64,000 nucleotides of DNA from Dimorphilus gyrociliatus (GCA_904063045.1 CAJFCJ010000019.1:248001-312000), one strand, 5' to 3'; positions 49,701 to 57,822 are shown, numbered from the stretch's first letter. The notes: generated by a model not told the origin, from the sequence alone. A program made the numbers and translations.

Positions 49701-50882
49701 CATACGCCTAAAAATAAACAACGTATACCATGCATTATAAGGTTCAATTAACCGAAACCGGAAATTCCTACCCGCGCAATTAACTACGCAGTTGGTCCGA
49801 ATCCGTCCCTTATTAGTTTGAACGGCATGCACTCTTCTAGTACCGTAGTCATCGACAACGGTTTCAATTGCCGTAAGGGAACAACCCTCAACTACTCGAG
49901 CGCCGGCTTTGGCGGCCGCTCTAGTCAAGGCTGAACAATAGCCTGCCGGTTCAATAGTGCCGTCGGCGGGACTGTAAAGCGTCGCGTAGACGTCATCTAC
50001 ATTCATTAAAGGGTATAGTTTTTTCGTTTCCTTTGGGCTGAGAACTTCAGACTCGACACCGAACGCCCTACCAAGCTGTTGCCAAAACATTAAACATATA
50101 TATAATGTAGTTTAGAAGCACGTAAACGTGTACAAAGTATTATATGCATAAATTATCCCCCCTAGGGGGGGTTGCCGCGTAATGTAAACACAGACCGTCA
50201 TTAATCTTTTGTACTCGTCCATGCGTTCGTTAGTGGAAGCAACGAACAAACCACCATTGTTTATCCAACCAGGATCGATGCCCGTTTCCGCTTCGAGGGA
50301 AGCCATCAATTTCCTACTTCTCACCAACAATTCCACTTCGACGTCGTTCGGTCTCAAATTCCATACCAAGCCTGTATTTTCCCAAACAAATCGTTTAAAT
50401 TTCCCCCGCCTTTCAAACTATCAGATTTTGCATTTTTATTTTTGTCGCATTGAGTATTTATTTCTGTTAGACTAAATTAGACATTAACGAAATGAGTAAG
50501 ATTCAACTTACCTGCCGTGTGCCATGATGTGCCAGCGGTTAGAGAATGCATTTCCAATAAAACGGTATTAGTTATACCCAATTTAGCCAGGTGATAAAGC
50601 GTACTACATCCAGCTGCACCTCCTCCCACGATAACAACGTCGGCTTCGGTTGGTAAAGACCTCTCGCTGCTTTCACGCAATACTTTTTCGTATTTCCTGT
50701 TTGGGAAGGAAGAGGACGGTTTATAGGCCTATTTGTTTAATGTTTATTTTCCTTTCTTCTTTCGACACTTACTTTGTTGGAACGCCAGTCGTGGCTGTCT
50801 GGTTCGACCTACGACCTCCTAAGGCTTGTAGACTTTTTGCATATGAAAAACGAGCGGTCAAACTGCGACCAACTTTCCACAT
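46790..50882 (-). CDS. SARDH: Sarcosine dehydrogenase, mitochondrial
   Basis: Arg/Ser-rich presequence exon ([16 protein letters not shown]), FAD motif [60 protein letters not shown]. Closer to SARDH than DMGDH in these motifs. Confidence 0.9.
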
Positions 50883-52340
50883 TTTTTTAGTGCTGTTGAC
50901 AAATCACTTCTCCAACAGGTAATGCTAGCTCTAAATCGGATGTTGTTCTTCGACAGATAACGAGACAGGATCGCACCAAAAAAAAAAAATAACAAAACCA
51001 ATAAGCCTATCTTGAACGAGTAAAAAAAACCGTGAATTCTCTTTTAATTTCGCTTTTTCATTTATTTTTTCTATTTTACTCGGAAGGTGTTCAATAATGG
51101 AAAAGAATGCAGATTGAATAGAGTAGGTGAAAGAATGATTTGCTTTCTCACGCCGAACTCGTTAATTACTATTGCTCTGTATCGAATGGCGATTTAATAA
51201 CGTTTTTTTGGAAAATCAACGTGTCATCGTAAATAATTGCGACGTTCCGCCGTCGATCGAATGAGATAAAGGAGGGAATAAAAAGGTCGATTATAGGCCT
51301 GAGTAGTTGAATACGTATTTTACACGCATTATACTACATAAATAAAAAAAAGTGGTTGAAAGAGGTAAAGGGAAAGGTGGAAGGAAAAGTAGAAAGAAAT
51401 AAAGAAAGGGAGTGGTACGTAAGACTTGTAAAACTATGAACAAAAAGAGAAATGAATGGGTATGCCGGCTTTTTTTTCCCTTTCCTTTTACTCTTATACT
51501 TTTACCATTTTGGACATTTCCACCTTTCCCATTTTCCTTTTTATACTTTCTTTTTTCAAAGAGATATGTTAAACGCGATGGGAAACTGTCTGACATGCCG
51601 TCACTTTCACGGGGGATAGCGTTTCCAGGTTTTTCCCACGCTTACGCGGTTTTTTCTCACATCGCAATCTTGCCAGTAATTTATTCGCGTCCGGACACGC
51701 ACGCGTGCGCACGTCGTTTTTTTTTTTTATATACGCCCCCATTTTTTTAATTAAAGTTATGTAAAGCCTTGTTTGTTGTGTATTCATTTAGTAATTATTC
51801 ATTTAAAAAGGCCATAGAACAAGTGGTAAATCTTCGTATACTGTATATGGTGTTTACTTATTATAGTCTTACAAAAGAGTAATTGAACGAACTTAAATGG
51901 ATCGAGAACGCGGCTTTTATAAGGTCAAATACCGGCTTTTTTTCTCACGCCAGCCAAGGAATGAACGGTGATTAGCTTTATGATGCTTCCCCGCCTTTCG
52001 AACTTGGAGTGAGGTGCGTGGAATGTGTTGACATCGTTGCTGCTCCTCCTCCACCGGTTGAACGTGTATGCCGACGGCGACGGCGGCCTCTGAATAAAAT
52101 AAAAAAATACAAGAGCGTCTATTTATAAGGCGTGAGAACTTTTACGATATGGGAAAAACGGTTGAAGTAAACATTTGTACTACGAACTGGAGTGTTTGGT
52201 AGTCGCGGCGTCGATTAATTCAGTAGATTCCCGTCACCTCTGACCCTTTGCTAATTCTTTGTTTTCCGCCGACGAAAACGCAAAAATAGGCCTAGGCGAC
52301 GCAAAAGTCGTGCGAACTTCCACGCCCTGTCATACGCTAG

Positions 52341-52378
52341 CCAATAGATGACGGCGATATAGCGAACTATTTATAAAA
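52341..52378 (+). promoter_or_regulatory. NRARP core promoter (CCAAT + TATA)
   Basis: CCAAT at 52341 and TATAAAA at 52372-52378, about 105 nt upstream of the likely ATG. Confidence 0.55.
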
Positions 52379-52481
52379 TCGCAGCTGATTGGCCGGCGCC
52401 TCGGTAATGCGATCTACTGAATCGAAAACTCCCAGCAGTTTCTCGTTGACCGTCGTCGAGCTTCGACGAGGGACGCGAAAG

Positions 52482-52802
52482 ATGATGGATAAATCTGCTA
52501 CCACCGACTACCAAAAACGCTTCCTGGAAGCTGTTCAAAACTGTGATATGTCTTCTATGACTGAACTATTGAAAGATCGACCAGGGAAGGTTAATGTGAA
52601 CGTGTTTGATAAAAGAACCGGCCAGACACCTCTTCATCAAGGATGCTTGGAAGGAAATATAGAACTTGTTCAATTGCTCATTCGATACGGAGCAGACGTT
52701 CGACTAGCTAATAGAGATGGATGGTCACCTCTCCATTTAGCTTGTTATACCGGTAATGAAAAGGTATATAAATACATCGTGAGGATGTTGCAAGAAGGCT
52801 AA
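52482..52802 (+). CDS. NRARP: Notch-regulated ankyrin repeat protein, intronless
   Basis: QKRFLEAV...GQTPLHQ...GNIELVQLLIRYGADVRLANRDGWSPLH matches NRARP. ATG 52482 preferred over 52407 because of the TATA position. Confidence 0.88.
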   Translation: MMDKSATTDYQKRFLEAVQNCDMSSMTELLKDRPGKVNVNVFDKRTGQTPLHQGCLEGNIELVQLLIRYGADVRLANRDGWSPLHLACYTGNEKVYKYIVRMLQEG

Positions 52803-55800
52803 ATTGAAAAGAATAAATATAGAGAAAAATAGACAATTTTTGAAAGTATCGAGAAGAAAGAGACTCTCGGTGAAAGTACCTTCTACTCTAGTCATTGATC
52901 CTGCAGACGATTTCCCACACTAATAAACTGATATGAATCTTATCGGCCAACAGCAATCGGACCGATAAGCGGTGTATAGATACAGAGACAGGCGTAAAAA
53001 CTTTGCGTTGATAGTGAGTCCTTTTTCTCCTTTTACACACATTTTAAATATTTAGTATGTCAATTCAAAAAAAAATGTATGTATCAGTCGATAATGGATA
53101 ACTTATATTTGCATTCAAGTAAACGATTTATGCATATATTTATTGTTTTTATTTATGTCTTATGATTATGTATAAATATACACATAAAATGTATATATTT
53201 ATATTTGTACTTATATTTTTATTGGAATGTTAGAGCTTTTTTTATATGAAGGACAAATTTAAAAAATTTCTATTATGAAAGAAAATAAAAATGCAGATGA
53301 ATATTTAAAAAAAAAACAATATGGTCATATTTACAAGTATAATATACATGAAGTTTATACCTTATTGAAGTATTGTCGGCTATTCTTGAGAAGAAAGAAA
53401 CACATGGCCCGCCCCTGTCTATAGGCCAAAACGCCGCAGGGAAAGCGTCTCGTTTTTCTCGCATAAATATAACCGACTACAAACGATCGGCTCCTTTGAC
53501 CGAGTAATTGATAGCAGATATAGGCGCTGCTAGGTCTGTCGGACAGGTGGCTCGTACAGCTTTCGCTACAGTAGGCAACTTCAATACGCCAAAGGGCCTG
53601 GGGTCAGGTAAGCTGACCGCTGAGCAGGGTAAGAGAGTGAGAGAGAAAAGAAATTTTTTAGCGCCTCTGCACCATCGAGTTTTAAAATAGCGAGCTAATA
53701 GACCAAGCTAAGCGTACGCCCATACCCTCCCTTCCTCCCATTACCCCCTCCCTTGCTATCCAAACCAACTTCCTTTGGTGGGAACCAAGGGTGAACTCGG
53801 TGATGAGTATTCTCTCTGAATTTGTCTGTTGGAGGTCGTAACTTAATTAGCTTGTAAACAATCAAGAATACAGAGGAACTACGCTCTTTCCTAACCTAAC
53901 CTTAACCTCTAAAAGCAACCTCGTTTATTCTCCCTCCTATGGGTTTCTTTATACTGGTAAGGTGGCCGATTAGCGGAATATATTAAGGTAGGAAAAGGGG
54001 CGCGTGCGCCTTATTTGCGTGCGGCGTTTTTTTAGAAGGAGCGCGCGCAACAACACCTGGCGCAAACAAAGGACGCCACGTGCAGCTACTGACCAATGTC
54101 CAGTTGAGCGTCGCATCTGTCCGCTTTGACACGTGCATTGTCGCTTCAAGCTCTATCTTTGCAATCGCAACAAATTACGGAGAAGACGGGTCCATCCAAC
54201 AATCACCTCCTACTCTTTTGCTTTCTCATTTCTAACTTCCTCCTTCCTATATCTTATTCAGAACAAATCGTTTAAAATGTTAATAGGATATAGTGTATAC
54301 GGGTTCCGCCCCACCTCCCCCCTAGTTTCTATCTCTAATAACGGGTTTGTGGAAGGCAGGGAGCGAGAAGACCCTGATAAGGATTAGATGGCTGACATTT
54401 TTCGAGTAATAAATGTCAAAACTATTCTTCCCACGACCCATGCCTTCTACGGCGCCCCCGTAAAAATCTGTTGCCGACACGATAGTGCATTTTTTTCCAT
54501 TGCTTGCAATGGAAGGGGGGACATTTAGCGCCCCTAAACGTGTTGACATTGGACAAGGGGGGCCAAGGAGAAGAGGAGTAACACCTGTCGGTGTTACTAT
54601 CGTCTATCCGCTTTTATTCTCCTAATTAATTCCGTTTTTCCTATCTTTTACCAATTTTTCTTGATCCATCAAGTATACGCCCACAGCTACGATACACATG
54701 CCATCACCACGAAACGTCAACAACCAACTGCAACCTCTGGCACGAGCCACACTCTTATAAAAAAAGAAGGTGGTTTGAGTATATAGAATCGTGTCCTCTT
54801 TGTATCTCTCTCTGACGACAGTCATCTCTCTCACCACTCGCCAAACAAAAGATGACCGTAAATTAGAGGTCAAGTAAAGTAAAGCGGACCGCCCGCATAG
54901 CAGTGAAGCAGTGGGGGGTGAGGGGTGAATGTGTTTGTCTAATAAAGAGAAAAAAAAAGGTAAAAAAAACAAGAAAATTGCCTCCCGTTTCCTTCTTCTT
55001 TTGTTGTTCGTCCTTCCACGCTGGGCGACGGAGGTTGTAACGGGAGAGAAAAACCTTACACCAGCTGCACATTGTAAGGCGTAAGATTCTCACGGGAATT
55101 AAAGAACTATATAGTAAGACGCATAAGTCTATATAGCAGAGCCTGCCAAGCTAGAATAAATATTTCCTAAACAAATATACAGAAATCAGGATAGAAGCAA
55201 AATATAACTAATCGAATGTATCAAGAACGGCTTGGAGGCTTTTGCGGTTGAACGATTTGTTGATAGACGAGGTAAGTCAAAGCATACGGAAGGAGATCAC
55301 TAGCTGGAAAATGAATTTGTTTAGAAAAAATATGAAGTGGTTTAGGGGAATAAAAGAAGAAAGGACAACAAGTGGCGAAGCTCGAAACAAGTAAAAACAA
55401 AACTATTTGAAAACTATTTGAAATACTTCAATTTCTATTTACATTCTACGGGGCTAGATAAGACGAAGAAAAACTTGTAAAAATGTGGAACCTGATATTG
55501 GTTGTTGCTGTCGAAAATTCCCTTTCTCCCCCTCCTTTACACCCTGCGGGAGATACTATCAAATAGTCCGGACGGTATTCTAATCGCTCAAAGAAATTTG
55601 TCAACTTGTTTAATTTCCCACAAAAAAGGAAACGTATTGATTAGTTAAAGCAGATTTTTTTTTCTCACGAGACGCTCGACTTCAAACGACGGAAAGGGCG
55701 GTCACCACCTGCTCGTCGTCTAATATAACTATCGCTTTGCCTAATTGGTTGTGACGTAATCGGTCTTATCTGGTAGACGTCGTATTTTTTTAGGCTTTAA

Positions 55801-56556
55801 AATGGAAAGAAAAAAGGCGGGGGACGTCAGATGGCATTGCTCGGAATGACGTCATGGGCCAACTTGATAGGGGTGTGGGAAAAACGGCAAAGTTCAAAGT
55901 CGTTGATAAGCGTATCAATTTTGAACGGCTCGTTTGATGGAAAGCACCTGCGAATCGCTGCTAAGAATAATTGAGATAATTTAGGTTTAATTATTCCAAA
56001 CATTTATTACACTTTTCCGTCTGTTAATTATCTTAAATAATACAAATAAAAACAAGAAAAGAAAATAAATATCACGGTCCCGTAACCTATTCAACTCTAC
56101 TTAGAAATTGAACAGACGCAGTCAATAGGCCTATACATACATTTTTTTTCTCTTTTACACATTAAGTTCGGTTATCGTGTCAATATATGTAAAGATAAGC
56201 GGCTTTTATTCCGTCTGAAAGCTAGGTTGTGCAGCAGTCATTCATCGCTTGAATGGGCAATTGATATGTCAGTTGTAGCGAACGTGAAACATAATACGCG
56301 TTTCTTTGTAAAAATCTCAAAGCCTTGCTATAGCCAGCAACAGATGGACGCCAGAATGGACGCACCATCTGCATGTCAGCCCAAACTCGAGTTTTTATTT
56401 TTCTAATGCCAACAAATGTGATTTTCAAATAGTGTTACCTGATAATAAAAATATCTAAAGATATCAGTTACATACAATTTTTATATATATTATTAATTTA
56501 TACAACGTATATATCGATCAAAAGTTGATAAAGCTGAACGGTGATTTAGTAAACAA

Positions 56557-57822
56557 ATGGCTGAATATGGGAGACAACTTTCATCGGATTCCGACACTGT
56601 ATTCCCTTTGATAAAGGATGGGCAATACACTTATACAGTCAGTTCTTATCATACTCCTTCGGAGGCGTCAAAATTTTGTGATTGCGCCAACGAGAGGTCG
56701 CAAATACGGCTTCCGGCCGTTCAGGAGGCTTCTACTAACAACCACAAGGAAATGGAAAACTCTTACATCCTTCTAGTAGATAAGTCCGGCGACGGTCTGG
56801 CGCATTGGTTAAAAGTTTTACAAGTCGGTCATGGCGACAGTGAGGTTATAGTTGATGATTATGTTCACATAGAAAAGTGGAAGACTATACAAGATAGAAA
56901 GGATTTTGAGGTCTGCTCGCTAGATGATAAATTATATATTATAGGGGGTTTGAACATTAGCGACCCGGATCAGGTTCGCACATTGGCAGATGTTGATATT
57001 TATGATCCAGTTAAGAACGATTGGAACCAGTGTTCCCCTCTGCTGACTCCGAGATCCAGATTTGCGTCGACAATAGTTAGAAATCGTATCTACATAGCCG
57101 GAGGCAGAAAATCCGACGGAAGGGTGACGGCCAGCTGCGAAATTTATAACCCAATTACAGATCAGTGGACGAAAATGGGTTTATTACCCGGACCCCGAGT
57201 AGGATTGGCTATAATTGGTACTGAGAAGAACAGACGAGATTTCGTTTACGTTTCTGGCGGTGTTCATGCCAAACAAACTAAAAACAACTTTTGGTGTTAC
57301 GAGAGCCTTAAGTGGTCAGAATTGGACGACGACTACCCACACAAAATACGCAGAAGTCTCGAGAGGCATTGTATGGTTATTGTCGATGGTGTTCTTTACT
57401 TCATTGGTGGTCTTAGCCGACAATTAGAAGGGGGCGAAACTAAGCGCGTTGAAGCGAAAGTTGACGCATTTACTCACCAGGTTACGTTAGCTGACAGGAG
57501 GCGGAGGGCGGATATCATTTGTCCTTGGAATTTAACTTTACCCTCGTTAAACATTGGTAGATATTCTGCCGCTACCGTAGTACTTGGAGATAATATAATG
57601 GTATTAGGGGGGAAATCCGCCAAAGGCGATGCAGTGGTCGAAATTGAAGTGTTTAACATTCACAAGAAGATTTGGAGAACCCTCTTTAAACTACCAGAAA
57701 ATGGTGAATACAGTAACGTAGGAGCCGTTTTATTAAAGGCTACACCAAACTTCGAATTTGAATCCACTCCTCCCACTCCTGACCCTCAGCAGTCAAATCC
57801 GGTTAAATGGATCATGTGGTAG
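56557..57822 (+). CDS. Kelch-repeat (beta-propeller) protein without a recognisable BTB domain
   Basis: 421-aa ORF with repeated YIxGG...VDIYDP...W motifs. May be extended by an upstream exon (~56266-56390). Confidence 0.85.
   Translation: MAEYGRQLSSDSDTVFPLIKDGQYTYTVSSYHTPSEASKFCDCANERSQIRLPAVQEASTNNHKEMENSYILLVDKSGDGLAHWLKVLQVGHGDSEVIVDDYVHIEKWKTIQDRKDFEVCSLDDKLYIIGGLNISDPDQVRTLADVDIYDPVKNDWNQCSPLLTPRSRFASTIVRNRIYIAGGRKSDGRVTASCEIYNPITDQWTKMGLLPGPRVGLAIIGTEKNRRDFVYVSGGVHAKQTKNNFWCYESLKWSELDDDYPHKIRRSLERHCMVIVDGVLYFIGGLSRQLEGGETKRVEAKVDAFTHQVTLADRRRRADIICPWNLTLPSLNIGRYSAATVVLGDNIMVLGGKSAKGDAVVEIEVFNIHKKIWRTLFKLPENGEYSNVGAVLLKATPNFEFESTPPTPDPQQSNPVKWIMW

Follow-up and report, generated by a model that had tools for sequence, protein, structure and literature searches.

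In vertebrates, NRARP is a textbook example of a Notch target that acts back on the pathway as an inhibitor. It is described as a direct target whose product binds CSL and the Notch intracellular domain (NICD) (PMC10523584, citing Krebs 2001, Lamar 2001 and Jarrett 2019). In mouse, Nrarp is bound by RBPJ and induced by NICD, and its RBPJ sites are comparatively distal (PMC9371899). The vertebrate gene is small, has a single exon, and encodes about 105-115 aa with little beyond two ankyrin repeats; CSL consensus sites lie near it, some of them away from the start site. To our knowledge, Drosophila lacks NRARP. Outside vertebrates, the NRARP literature that we found consists of expression data from Platynereis dumerilii, where the annelid orthologue Pdu-Nrarp is co-expressed with Notch components and is drastically reduced under gamma-secretase inhibitors (PMC5356439).

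The response elements of HES and E(spl) genes are built on the same motif, YGTGRGAA. The classic E(spl)/Hes1 elements are head-to-head paired sites (SPS) with a 15-17 bp spacer, which are present in many strong Notch targets and are not obligatory. A further parallel is provided by homotypic transcription factor site clusters in conserved non-coding elements, where many sites for one factor occur in blocks conserved far above neutral levels. The setting described here differs, since the genome of the annelid Dimorphilus gyrociliatus is reported to be stripped of most distal regulatory DNA, with the bulk of its regulation located no more than 1 kb from start sites (PMC7854359). We describe a locus in this genome where a single-copy NRARP gene with one exon is probably surrounded by an array of conserved elements that respond to Notch through CSL. 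Unlike the vertebrate sites, which were shown experimentally, the D. gyrociliatus sites are a sequence prediction; they are unpaired and crowd the two flanks of the gene within 4.7 kb, in a genome of 78 Mb.

Results

NRARP gene, transcripts, and neighbours

The window, by which we mean the whole 64-kb stretch of DNA that was analysed, contains an uninterrupted single-exon ORF of 106 codons plus stop at 52482..52802 (+), present once in the genome. The 106-aa product has two ankyrin repeats (residues 16-100, matched by Ank, Ank_2, and Ank_4) and along its full length shares 46-58% identity with NRARP-named proteins of the molluscs Biomphalaria, Physella, and Candidula and the nemertean Tubulanus. 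A GADVRLANRDGW..LH block is invariant across NRARP and the aligned mollusc and nemertean relatives, and the next best match within the same genome is merely 36% identical. An earlier note on this DNA had named the 321-nt gene NRARP, and the annotation of its best named relatives bears this out; the identity is based on comparison with mollusc and nemertean proteins. In a PDB sequence search with NRARP, DARPins and ankyrin proteins with many repeats dominated the matches, and the solved NRARP complex was not among them. A three-chain complex prediction with NRARP and the Su(H) and Notch RAM-ANK of the same genome scored 0.29, short of the 0.34 mark, and has no bearing on binding in either direction.

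A colinear, unspliced RNA contig of 1605 nt covers 51470..53074 (+) with no mismatches (run X8, contig 23), showing that the coding region is intronless, and a 1459-nt RNA contig of a related worm (L003) corresponds to about 51655-53125. The former implies that the 5' leader is long or that a transcript from upstream overlaps the gene. An AATAAA lies at 52922, and the RNA evidence, which consists of assembled contigs, suggests a transcript 3' end near 53.07-53.12 kb. The non-coding stretch upstream of NRARP is partly transcribed, and five CSL sites lie inside DNA covered by an RNA contig. Farther upstream, a spliced + strand transcript covers 50900-51019 and 51087-51477. Its 67-nt GT..AG intron at 51020..51086 (+) was placed by a joint in contig 22 of X8 and by its splice dinucleotides; the median intron published for D. 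gyrociliatus is 66 bp (PMC7854359). It may represent either a distal leader of NRARP or a non-coding RNA that is divergently transcribed.

The upstream neighbour is a DAO/GCV_T-type (dimethylglycine or sarcosine dehydrogenase-like) gene, whose first coding exon at 50477..50680 (-) was recognized from its ORF and from Pfam matches at the syntenic locus of the relative. It is transcribed away from NRARP, and the CSL site at 51145 lies near its divergent promoter. The downstream neighbour encodes an intronless 421-aa Kelch-repeat protein at 56557..57822 (+), with an RNA contig that begins by 56082.

A local cluster of CSL-type sites

The motif YRTGRGAA occurs 21 times in the window compared to 17.4 expected from shuffles. 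The window as a whole thus holds no more matches than chance predicts, and the excess is confined to one place: 12 of the 21 matches sit in 51145-55881, exactly the 12 matches in 4.7 kb that the earlier note had counted around NRARP. They are divided evenly, with six before the start codon of the gene and six beyond its stop codon. For the stricter CSL consensus YGTGRGAA, 11 of the 15 matches in the window fall in this interval and 4 elsewhere. This consensus has 6000 sites in 77.9 Mb genome-wide, which predicts 0.36 per 4.7 kb; the comparison with genome background that had been proposed as a check thus shows that such a density is not general. The Poisson tail for 11 strict sites is ~3e-13, and ~5e-8 clusters this dense, anchored on a site, are expected in the whole genome. 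The true consensus also ranked first among 3360 permutations in the interval (11 matches compared to a mean of 0.5), and local composition is therefore not the cause of the cluster. First-order Markov simulations of the interval never gave more than 6 matches, and partial variants of the 8-mer reached only 5-7 compared to 11 for the full motif. The extended Su(H) consensus is YGTGRGAAM, which 10 of the 12 sites match at position 9 by having A or C there.

Screens of the genome for three close sites returned mainly satellites and dispersed repeats. Six such triplets occur in the NRARP flanks, compared to at most three at any other unique locus. No repeat family linking the CSL sites was found, and the sites are not repeat copies. 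A search for SPS (head-to-head pair, 11-21 bp spacer, at most two mismatches) found no canonical pair at the NRARP locus, in agreement with what had been noted before; the sole candidate is weak and is disrupted in the relative by two mismatches and an indel.

Conservation of the NRARP flanks

We compared the locus to the syntenic locus (L001) of one fairly close relative. Neutral sites are near saturation in this pair of worms: four-fold codon sites are 52% identical, introns 45-55%, and other intergenic DNA ~50%, and the first two values give a neutral 8-mer a survival probability of 0.005. All 12 CSL sites are intact in the relative, with order, strand, and sequence kept. Of the local non-coding 8-mers only 46.7% are intact, so that survival of all 12 sites is improbable by chance (p ~1e-4); because the relative is close, conservation of the sites is not fully separable from that of the enclosing blocks. 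The NRARP non-coding flanks are 83% identical overall and contain 20 perfect blocks of at least 40 bp, the longest of 172 bp. This identity, well above the levels in introns, other intergenic DNA, and four-fold sites, supports the earlier suggestion that the enhancers resisted compaction. The earlier note also took this for the largest non-coding stretch of the window; the length of ORF-free gaps proved no useful gauge of this because of random ORFs.

The region 51.1-56.0 kb is made up of about seven conserved non-coding modules, five of which hold the 11 YGTGRGAA matches and one weaker site. Upstream of the gene, CGTGAGAA at 51145..51152 (-) is intact within a 19-bp perfect block. An 85-bp perfect block (51631-51715) includes CGTGGGAA at 51633..51640 (-) and also contains CACGCGTG; TGTGAGAA at 51654..51661 (-) follows 21 bp from the first site in identical orientation. 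CGTGAGAA recurs at 51942..51949 (-) within an 86-bp perfect block (51869-51954) and at 52131..52138 (+) in a 37-bp perfect block (52102-52138), where a conserved TATTTATAA (52120-52128) lies immediately upstream. The weaker CSL-like site, TATGGGAA at 52148..52155 (+), has A at position 2, and its 8-mer is intact at L001 position 8710.

Downstream of the stop codon, TGTGGGAA at 52912..52919 (-) lies inside the NRARP 3' untranslated region, and CGTGGGAA at 54428..54435 (-) within a 42-bp perfect block. CGTGAGAA at 55087..55094 (-), with a CAGCTG 25 bp upstream of it, belongs to a perfect block of 164 bp (55071-55234). The last three sites are TGTGGGAA at 55615..55622 (-) in a 56-bp perfect block, CGTGAGAA at 55662..55669 (-), a consensus match conserved in the relative, and TGTGGGAA at 55874..55881 (+), which belongs to a perfect block of 71 bp and is separated by ~200 bp from the start of the Kelch RNA contig. 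Two of the longest conserved blocks are without a CSL site, which implies that other factors act here too. One is the 172-bp block at 53416..53587, which has no Rfam match and no unusual RNA fold (z = -0.33). The other, of 150 bp at 53998..54147, likewise has no unusual RNA fold (z = -0.51) and contains CACGCG, two CACGTG, and CACCTG, which are candidate bHLH (HES-type or proneural) sites.

Notch pathway genes and other loci

The genome encodes a Su(H)/CSL protein with LAG1, BTD, and TIG domains, and contains a second and a partial LAG1-type locus. Notch has a Pfam NOD match, and its 563-aa ORF shows LWLPEGF, a motif of RAM type, as well as a region resembling ankyrin repeats, both read by eye rather than scanned. 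The HES/HEY loci, as classic Notch targets, served as an internal positive control: 11 loci of the same genome contain 36 sites compared to 8.5 expected (~4-fold), and the reversed control gave 13. Site density is 2.3 per kb in the NRARP flanks compared to 0.7 at the best HES locus, a difference of about 3 times. Seven other spiralian NRARP loci together contain 38 sites compared to 15 expected (about 2.5-fold), and four of the seven share a minus-strand CGTGGGAA that precedes the NRARP start codon by 370-750 bp. In Tubulanus, nine CSL sites lie 3-9 kb downstream of NRARP, where no gene is called.

Discussion

The motif excess, its conservation, the enrichment at HES/HEY and spiralian NRARP loci, the pathway genes of this genome, and the expression of the Platynereis orthologue strongly suggest that vertebrate-type Notch-to-NRARP feedback is wired likewise in annelids, in support of the hard-wired loop that the earlier note had proposed. 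CSL would occupy the NRARP-flanking sites when the signal is absent; upon cleavage of Notch, the intracellular domain would join CSL and NRARP would be activated, both through the cluster near its promoter (51145-52155) and through distal modules that lie 1.6-3.1 kb downstream. By homology, NRARP protein may then bind the CSL-Notch complex and damp the signal as in vertebrates. Since the CSL sites are monomeric, and differ in this respect from the paired HES and E(spl) elements, the response would rest on many single sites and on neighbouring factors; the CACGCG, CACGTG, and CACCTG boxes are conserved in the same blocks.

Not every site need serve NRARP. The Kelch RNA contig starts just 200-470 bp from the three sites at 55615-55881, between which there are conserved CRE-like TGACGT/TGACGTCA motifs. 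NRARP might therefore be served only by 51145-52155 (perhaps with 52912), while the distal sites, especially 55615-55881, formed the Kelch promoter and 51145 perhaps belonged to the dehydrogenase-like gene, a division that fits the reported confinement of regulation to 1 kb around start sites (PMC7854359). However, sites 54428 and 55087 stand 1.0-1.7 kb off the Kelch start, and the nine downstream sites of Tubulanus are not accompanied by any called gene. Moreover, the Kelch and dehydrogenase genes are not known to be Notch targets. The comparatively distal RBPJ sites of mouse Nrarp (PMC9371899) also speak for a common role of the sites in NRARP control, and we regard the division among genes as unlikely. 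It is also rather improbable that the motifs are selected for a function without Notch, with CSL as a constitutive repressor or with another factor that recognizes a TGGGAA/TGAGAA core. The bound protein is not identifiable from sequence alone, RBPJ has Notch-independent functions (PMC9371899), and the additional LAG1-type loci would be compatible with such a function. By contrast, the full 8-mer is enriched well above its partial variants, position 9 fits CSL, the HES/HEY loci are enriched too, and annelid Nrarp needs gamma-secretase activity (PMC5356439).

A reading of the conserved blocks as exons or as genes for structured RNA, instead of regulatory DNA, has very little chance of being right. 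In its favour are a low-depth piece of RNA over 54977-55154 and, on the minus strand at 54343-54455, a weak Rfam match of mir-71 type with a good fold (z = -4.3). We rejected the latter as a microRNA, as it scores 23 bits compared to a gathering score of 50, its 3' arm is not maintained in the relative (-42 compared to -28 kcal/mol), and there is a difference in what would be the miR-71 seed. Downstream of NRARP, just 8 of 31 indels are multiples of three, and perfect identity over 150-172 bp is incompatible with coding because four-fold sites are 52% identical. There is no Rfam match at gathering threshold, and the two largest blocks lack an unusual fold. That chance, base composition, or a repeated element produced the cluster is practically negligible. 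The looser motif is at chance window-wide and the limits of the interval were chosen after the sites had been seen; against this stand the genome-wide expectation and permutation rank given above, the lack of a repeat family joining the sites, and their conservation in a second species.

We therefore return to Notch-responsive elements around NRARP as the preferred reading of the locus. More tentatively, NRARP, and not any HES gene, may have the strongest homotypic CSL cluster in unique DNA, set in an array of non-coding elements of roughly 5.5 kb that is kept at 83% identity although neutral DNA is saturated, and an ancestral bilaterian, multi-enhancer, and partly distal feedback may have survived compaction. 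The Platynereis study is confined to expression, does not describe cis-regulatory sequence, and places expression mainly in the chaetal sacs (PMC5356439). The regulatory map of D. gyrociliatus complements it with twelve conserved predicted CSL sites in about seven modules in a tractable annelid with a tiny genome. As far as we know, dinophilids are without chaetal sacs, so that the tissue context must differ. If the sites are functional, direct Notch control of NRARP goes back to the bilaterian ancestor, the locus clearly departs from the loss of distal control that has been reported for this compact genome, and its enhancers could provide a compact reporter of spiralian Notch activity.

Contigs from coral metatranscriptome runs match the conserved blocks only, and appear to derive from DNA or RNA of the relative.

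A dense cluster of CSL sites flanks NRARP

The genome has one copy of NRARP, an open reading frame at 52482-52802 (+ strand) whose 106-residue product has two ankyrin repeats. Aligned over its full length, the protein shows 46-58% identity to annotated NRARP of gastropods and a nemertean, and contains the GADVRLANRDGW..LH block that is invariant among those proteins. YRTGRGAA, the looser form of the motif for CSL (Su(H)/RBPJ), matches 21 times in the window compared to 17.4 expected from shuffles, and 12 of these matches lie within 51145-55881, the same count that an earlier note had claimed for the 4.7 kb around this 321-nt gene. Thus, the window-wide count is no more than chance would give, and the excess is a local one. 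The strict CSL/Su(H) consensus, YGTGRGAA, occurs 11 times in this interval compared to 4 times in the remaining 59 kb of the window. The extended Su(H) consensus has A or C at position 9, as do 10 of the 12 sites. As the earlier note also stated, the interval contains no head-to-head paired (SPS) site.

The window corresponds to C19:248001-312000 of the assembly. Assembly-wide, YGTGRGAA occurs 6000 times in 77.9 Mb (reversed control, 6209), a density (0.077 per kb) at which 4.7 kb should hold 0.36 sites. The concern that the motif might be similarly dense genome-wide is not borne out by the 11 strict sites found, for which the Poisson tail is ≈3e-13; equally dense clusters, anchored on any one site, are expected ≈5e-8 times in the genome. 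The excess cannot be put down to local composition, because the real consensus ranked first of 3360 permutations in the interval (11 compared to a mean of 0.5) and no first-order Markov simulation of this stretch gave more than 6 sites. The next-ranked permutations were overlapping variants of the CSL motif itself. A repeat origin was rejected, since the sites are not repeat copies.

We screened the whole assembly for three CSL sites with gaps of ≤480 nt in all orientation classes. The NRARP flanks contain six such triplets (C19:299145-300138 and C19:303615-303881), compared to three or fewer at every other unique locus. The runner-up, C4:1690835-1691446 (L021:4636-5240), is an unannotated stretch with four strict sites in 600 bp, the second-densest CSL cluster found in unique DNA, and has no recognisable ORF or Pfam match. 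It lies ≈72 kb from the Notch gene. The remaining matches were mostly dispersed repeats or tandem satellites at the starts of C7 and C12 and in C38, C67, and C74. Satellites that each carry a TTCTCACA match (C7:130-5835, C12:1197-8769, C38:153475-157244, C67:13415-19187, and C74:105655-107367) have periods of roughly 468, 171-342, and 345-430 bp; they dominate genome-wide clustered-CSL screens, and two are located at contig starts.

CSL sites at other Notch-related loci

The genome encodes Su(H) with LAG1, BTD, and TIG domains and a Notch receptor that matches NOD. In the 563-aa ORF of the Notch intracellular domain, a RAM-type LWLPEGF motif and a region resembling ankyrin repeats are visible by eye. 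As a positive control, we used eleven 10-kb stretches centred on the 12 Hairy_orange (HES/HEY) matches of the genome. These stretches contain 36 CSL sites compared to 8.5 expected (reversed control, 13), which implies that the motif marks classic Notch targets in this genome too. The densest of them has 7 sites in 10 kb, compared to 11 in 4.7 kb at NRARP.

Seven NRARP loci from other species (Biomphalaria, Physella, Tubulanus, and four further eukaryotic assemblies) together contain 38 CSL sites in 141 kb compared to 15 expected (reversed controls, 11), and 12 compared to 4.2 expected within 2.5 kb of the coding sequence. In four of these loci, a minus-strand CGTGGGAA recurs at 370-750 bp upstream of the NRARP start. 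In Tubulanus polymorphus (OZ123232.1), nine strict sites lie 3-9 kb downstream of NRARP (L005:13242-19749), where ≈1 is expected in 10 kb and no gene is called; the 10 kb upstream contain none. Dimorphilus is close to the richest of these spiralian loci in number of sites, but packs them into less space.

Upstream of the Su(H) ORF (L024:2500-3801, - strand), one CSL triplet was found at ≈3.3 kb, and four CSL sites (C7:3939567-3941558; L024:5568-7558) lie at 1.8-3.8 kb; the reversed-motif control gave 0 in this locus. These sites may reflect Su(H) autoregulation or may belong to a 333-aa ORF at L024:8276-9277. The LAG1 DNA-binding domain is encoded at C7:3937372, C13:1162116, and C7:3127306; two loci are full-scoring (both ≈159 bits) and the third is weaker. 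They may represent paralogues of CSL or haplotypes left uncollapsed.

Complete conservation of the sites in a close relative

A 20.6-kb public contig of a close relative (L001; Logan SRR23372228) encodes an NRARP that is 97-98% identical in protein and has the gene order of the window: dehydrogenase, NRARP, Kelch, and HMG-CoA synthase. All 12 CSL sites are kept in identical order, strand, and sequence, and the equivalent interval contains no additional ones. At four-fold degenerate positions in NRARP and Kelch, the two species agree in only 52% of cases, and the dehydrogenase introns and Kelch-to-HMG-CoA-synthase spacer are 22-55% identical, which implies that neutral DNA is almost saturated with changes. 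The non-coding DNA that separates the start codons of the two neighbouring genes (5.5 kb), by contrast, has 83.4% identity, nearly as much as the NRARP coding sequence (86.9%), in keeping with the earlier inference that NRARP enhancers resisted compaction.

Within this non-coding DNA, 20 blocks of ≥40 bp are perfectly conserved, the longest 172 bp, and low-conservation spacers (50.98-51.08, 51.38-51.58, 53.08-53.28, 54.18-54.28, 54.78-54.88, and 55.98-56.08 kb) divide it into about seven modules. Given that 46.7% of local 8-mers are intact, conservation of all 12 sites has p ≈ 1e-4; moreover, 7 of the 12 lie inside perfect blocks of ≥40 bp, which make up 25% of the region (p = 0.013). The relative was found in several public runs, and coral metatranscriptome contigs appear to derive from it as well. 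Comparison with this species lends itself to phylogenetic footprinting throughout the D. gyrociliatus genome.

Transcripts around NRARP

A contig of RNA run X8 is colinear with 51470-53074, which implies that NRARP has no intron. A second, spliced + strand contig (50900-51477; joint 51019/51087, GT..AG, 67-nt intron) heads from the dehydrogenase gene towards NRARP and stops at 51477, abutting the NRARP contig. The 67-nt length agrees with the median intron of 66 bp in the published 73.8-Mb D. gyrociliatus genome (PMC7854359). The spliced transcript has no convincing ORF; candidate identities are a divergent non-coding RNA and a distal leader exon of NRARP. Judging from its 2414-nt length at a depth of 513, the Logan contig that carries this transcript probably joins it to the dehydrogenase mRNA. 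In the relative, a 1459-nt contig covers the equivalent of ≈51655-53125. Together with the abutting X8 contigs, this implies either an NRARP leader of ≈1 kb or an overlapping upstream transcript. A TATA-like element at 52120 directly abuts a CSL site inside a perfectly conserved block; another at 52368 is only partly conserved.

Discussion

We consider it likely that NRARP is controlled by Notch/CSL response elements, predicted as a proximal cluster (51145-52155), one 3' UTR site, and distal modules (54.4-55.9 kb). CSL would occupy these sites, transcription would depend on Notch, and the protein would act as an inhibitor. This predicted direct Notch target region at an annelid NRARP orthologue is a link that a specialist would expect. 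In Platynereis, Pdu-Nrarp shares its expression with Notch components and falls drastically under gamma-secretase inhibitors (PMC5356439). In mouse, NICD induces Nrarp and RBPJ binds it, at sites comparatively distant from the start site (PMC9371899). Published work also presents NRARP as a direct target of Notch whose protein binds CSL and NICD (PMC10523584). What is notable is that the top CSL cluster in unique DNA by the consensus-triplet screen, with every site conserved, survives in a compacted genome. The D. gyrociliatus genome packs 209 genes into each Mb, its intergenic regions are short, and most regulatory information is reported within 1 kb of start sites, with distal elements potentially lost (PMC7854359). 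The 5.9-kb NRARP interval, with 321 nt coding and dense conserved blocks, is an exception to this trend.

The main rival to control of NRARP is partial: three sites at 55615-55881 lie 200-470 bp upstream of the Kelch transcript, beside conserved CRE-like motifs, and may serve the Kelch gene. Other readings concern the conserved blocks themselves, which are neither coding nor obviously structured RNA. Perfect block identity is incompatible with coding because synonymous sites are saturated, and only 8 of 31 downstream indels are divisible by three. No Rfam match in the region reached threshold, and folding of the two largest blocks was no stronger than that of shuffled sequences. A weak mir-71 match at 54343-54455 (- strand; 23 bits, E 0.23) forms a stable hairpin (z = -4.3) with the CSL site at 54428 in its 5' arm. 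This candidate was rejected because the 3' arm has uncompensated changes in the relative that weaken the fold from -42 to -28 kcal/mol, and the miR-71 seed is unmatched.

Besides the predicted Notch/CSL elements, class B/C E-boxes (CACGCGTG, CACGCG, and two CACGTG) occur at 51700-51709 and 53998-54147, five in all compared to ≈1.1 expected. As a lead only, the conserved CACGCG, CACGTG, and CACCTG boxes hint at HES/Hey or other bHLH input beside the CSL sites; all five class B/C boxes lie inside perfectly conserved blocks, and the CACCTG box is also in conserved blocks.
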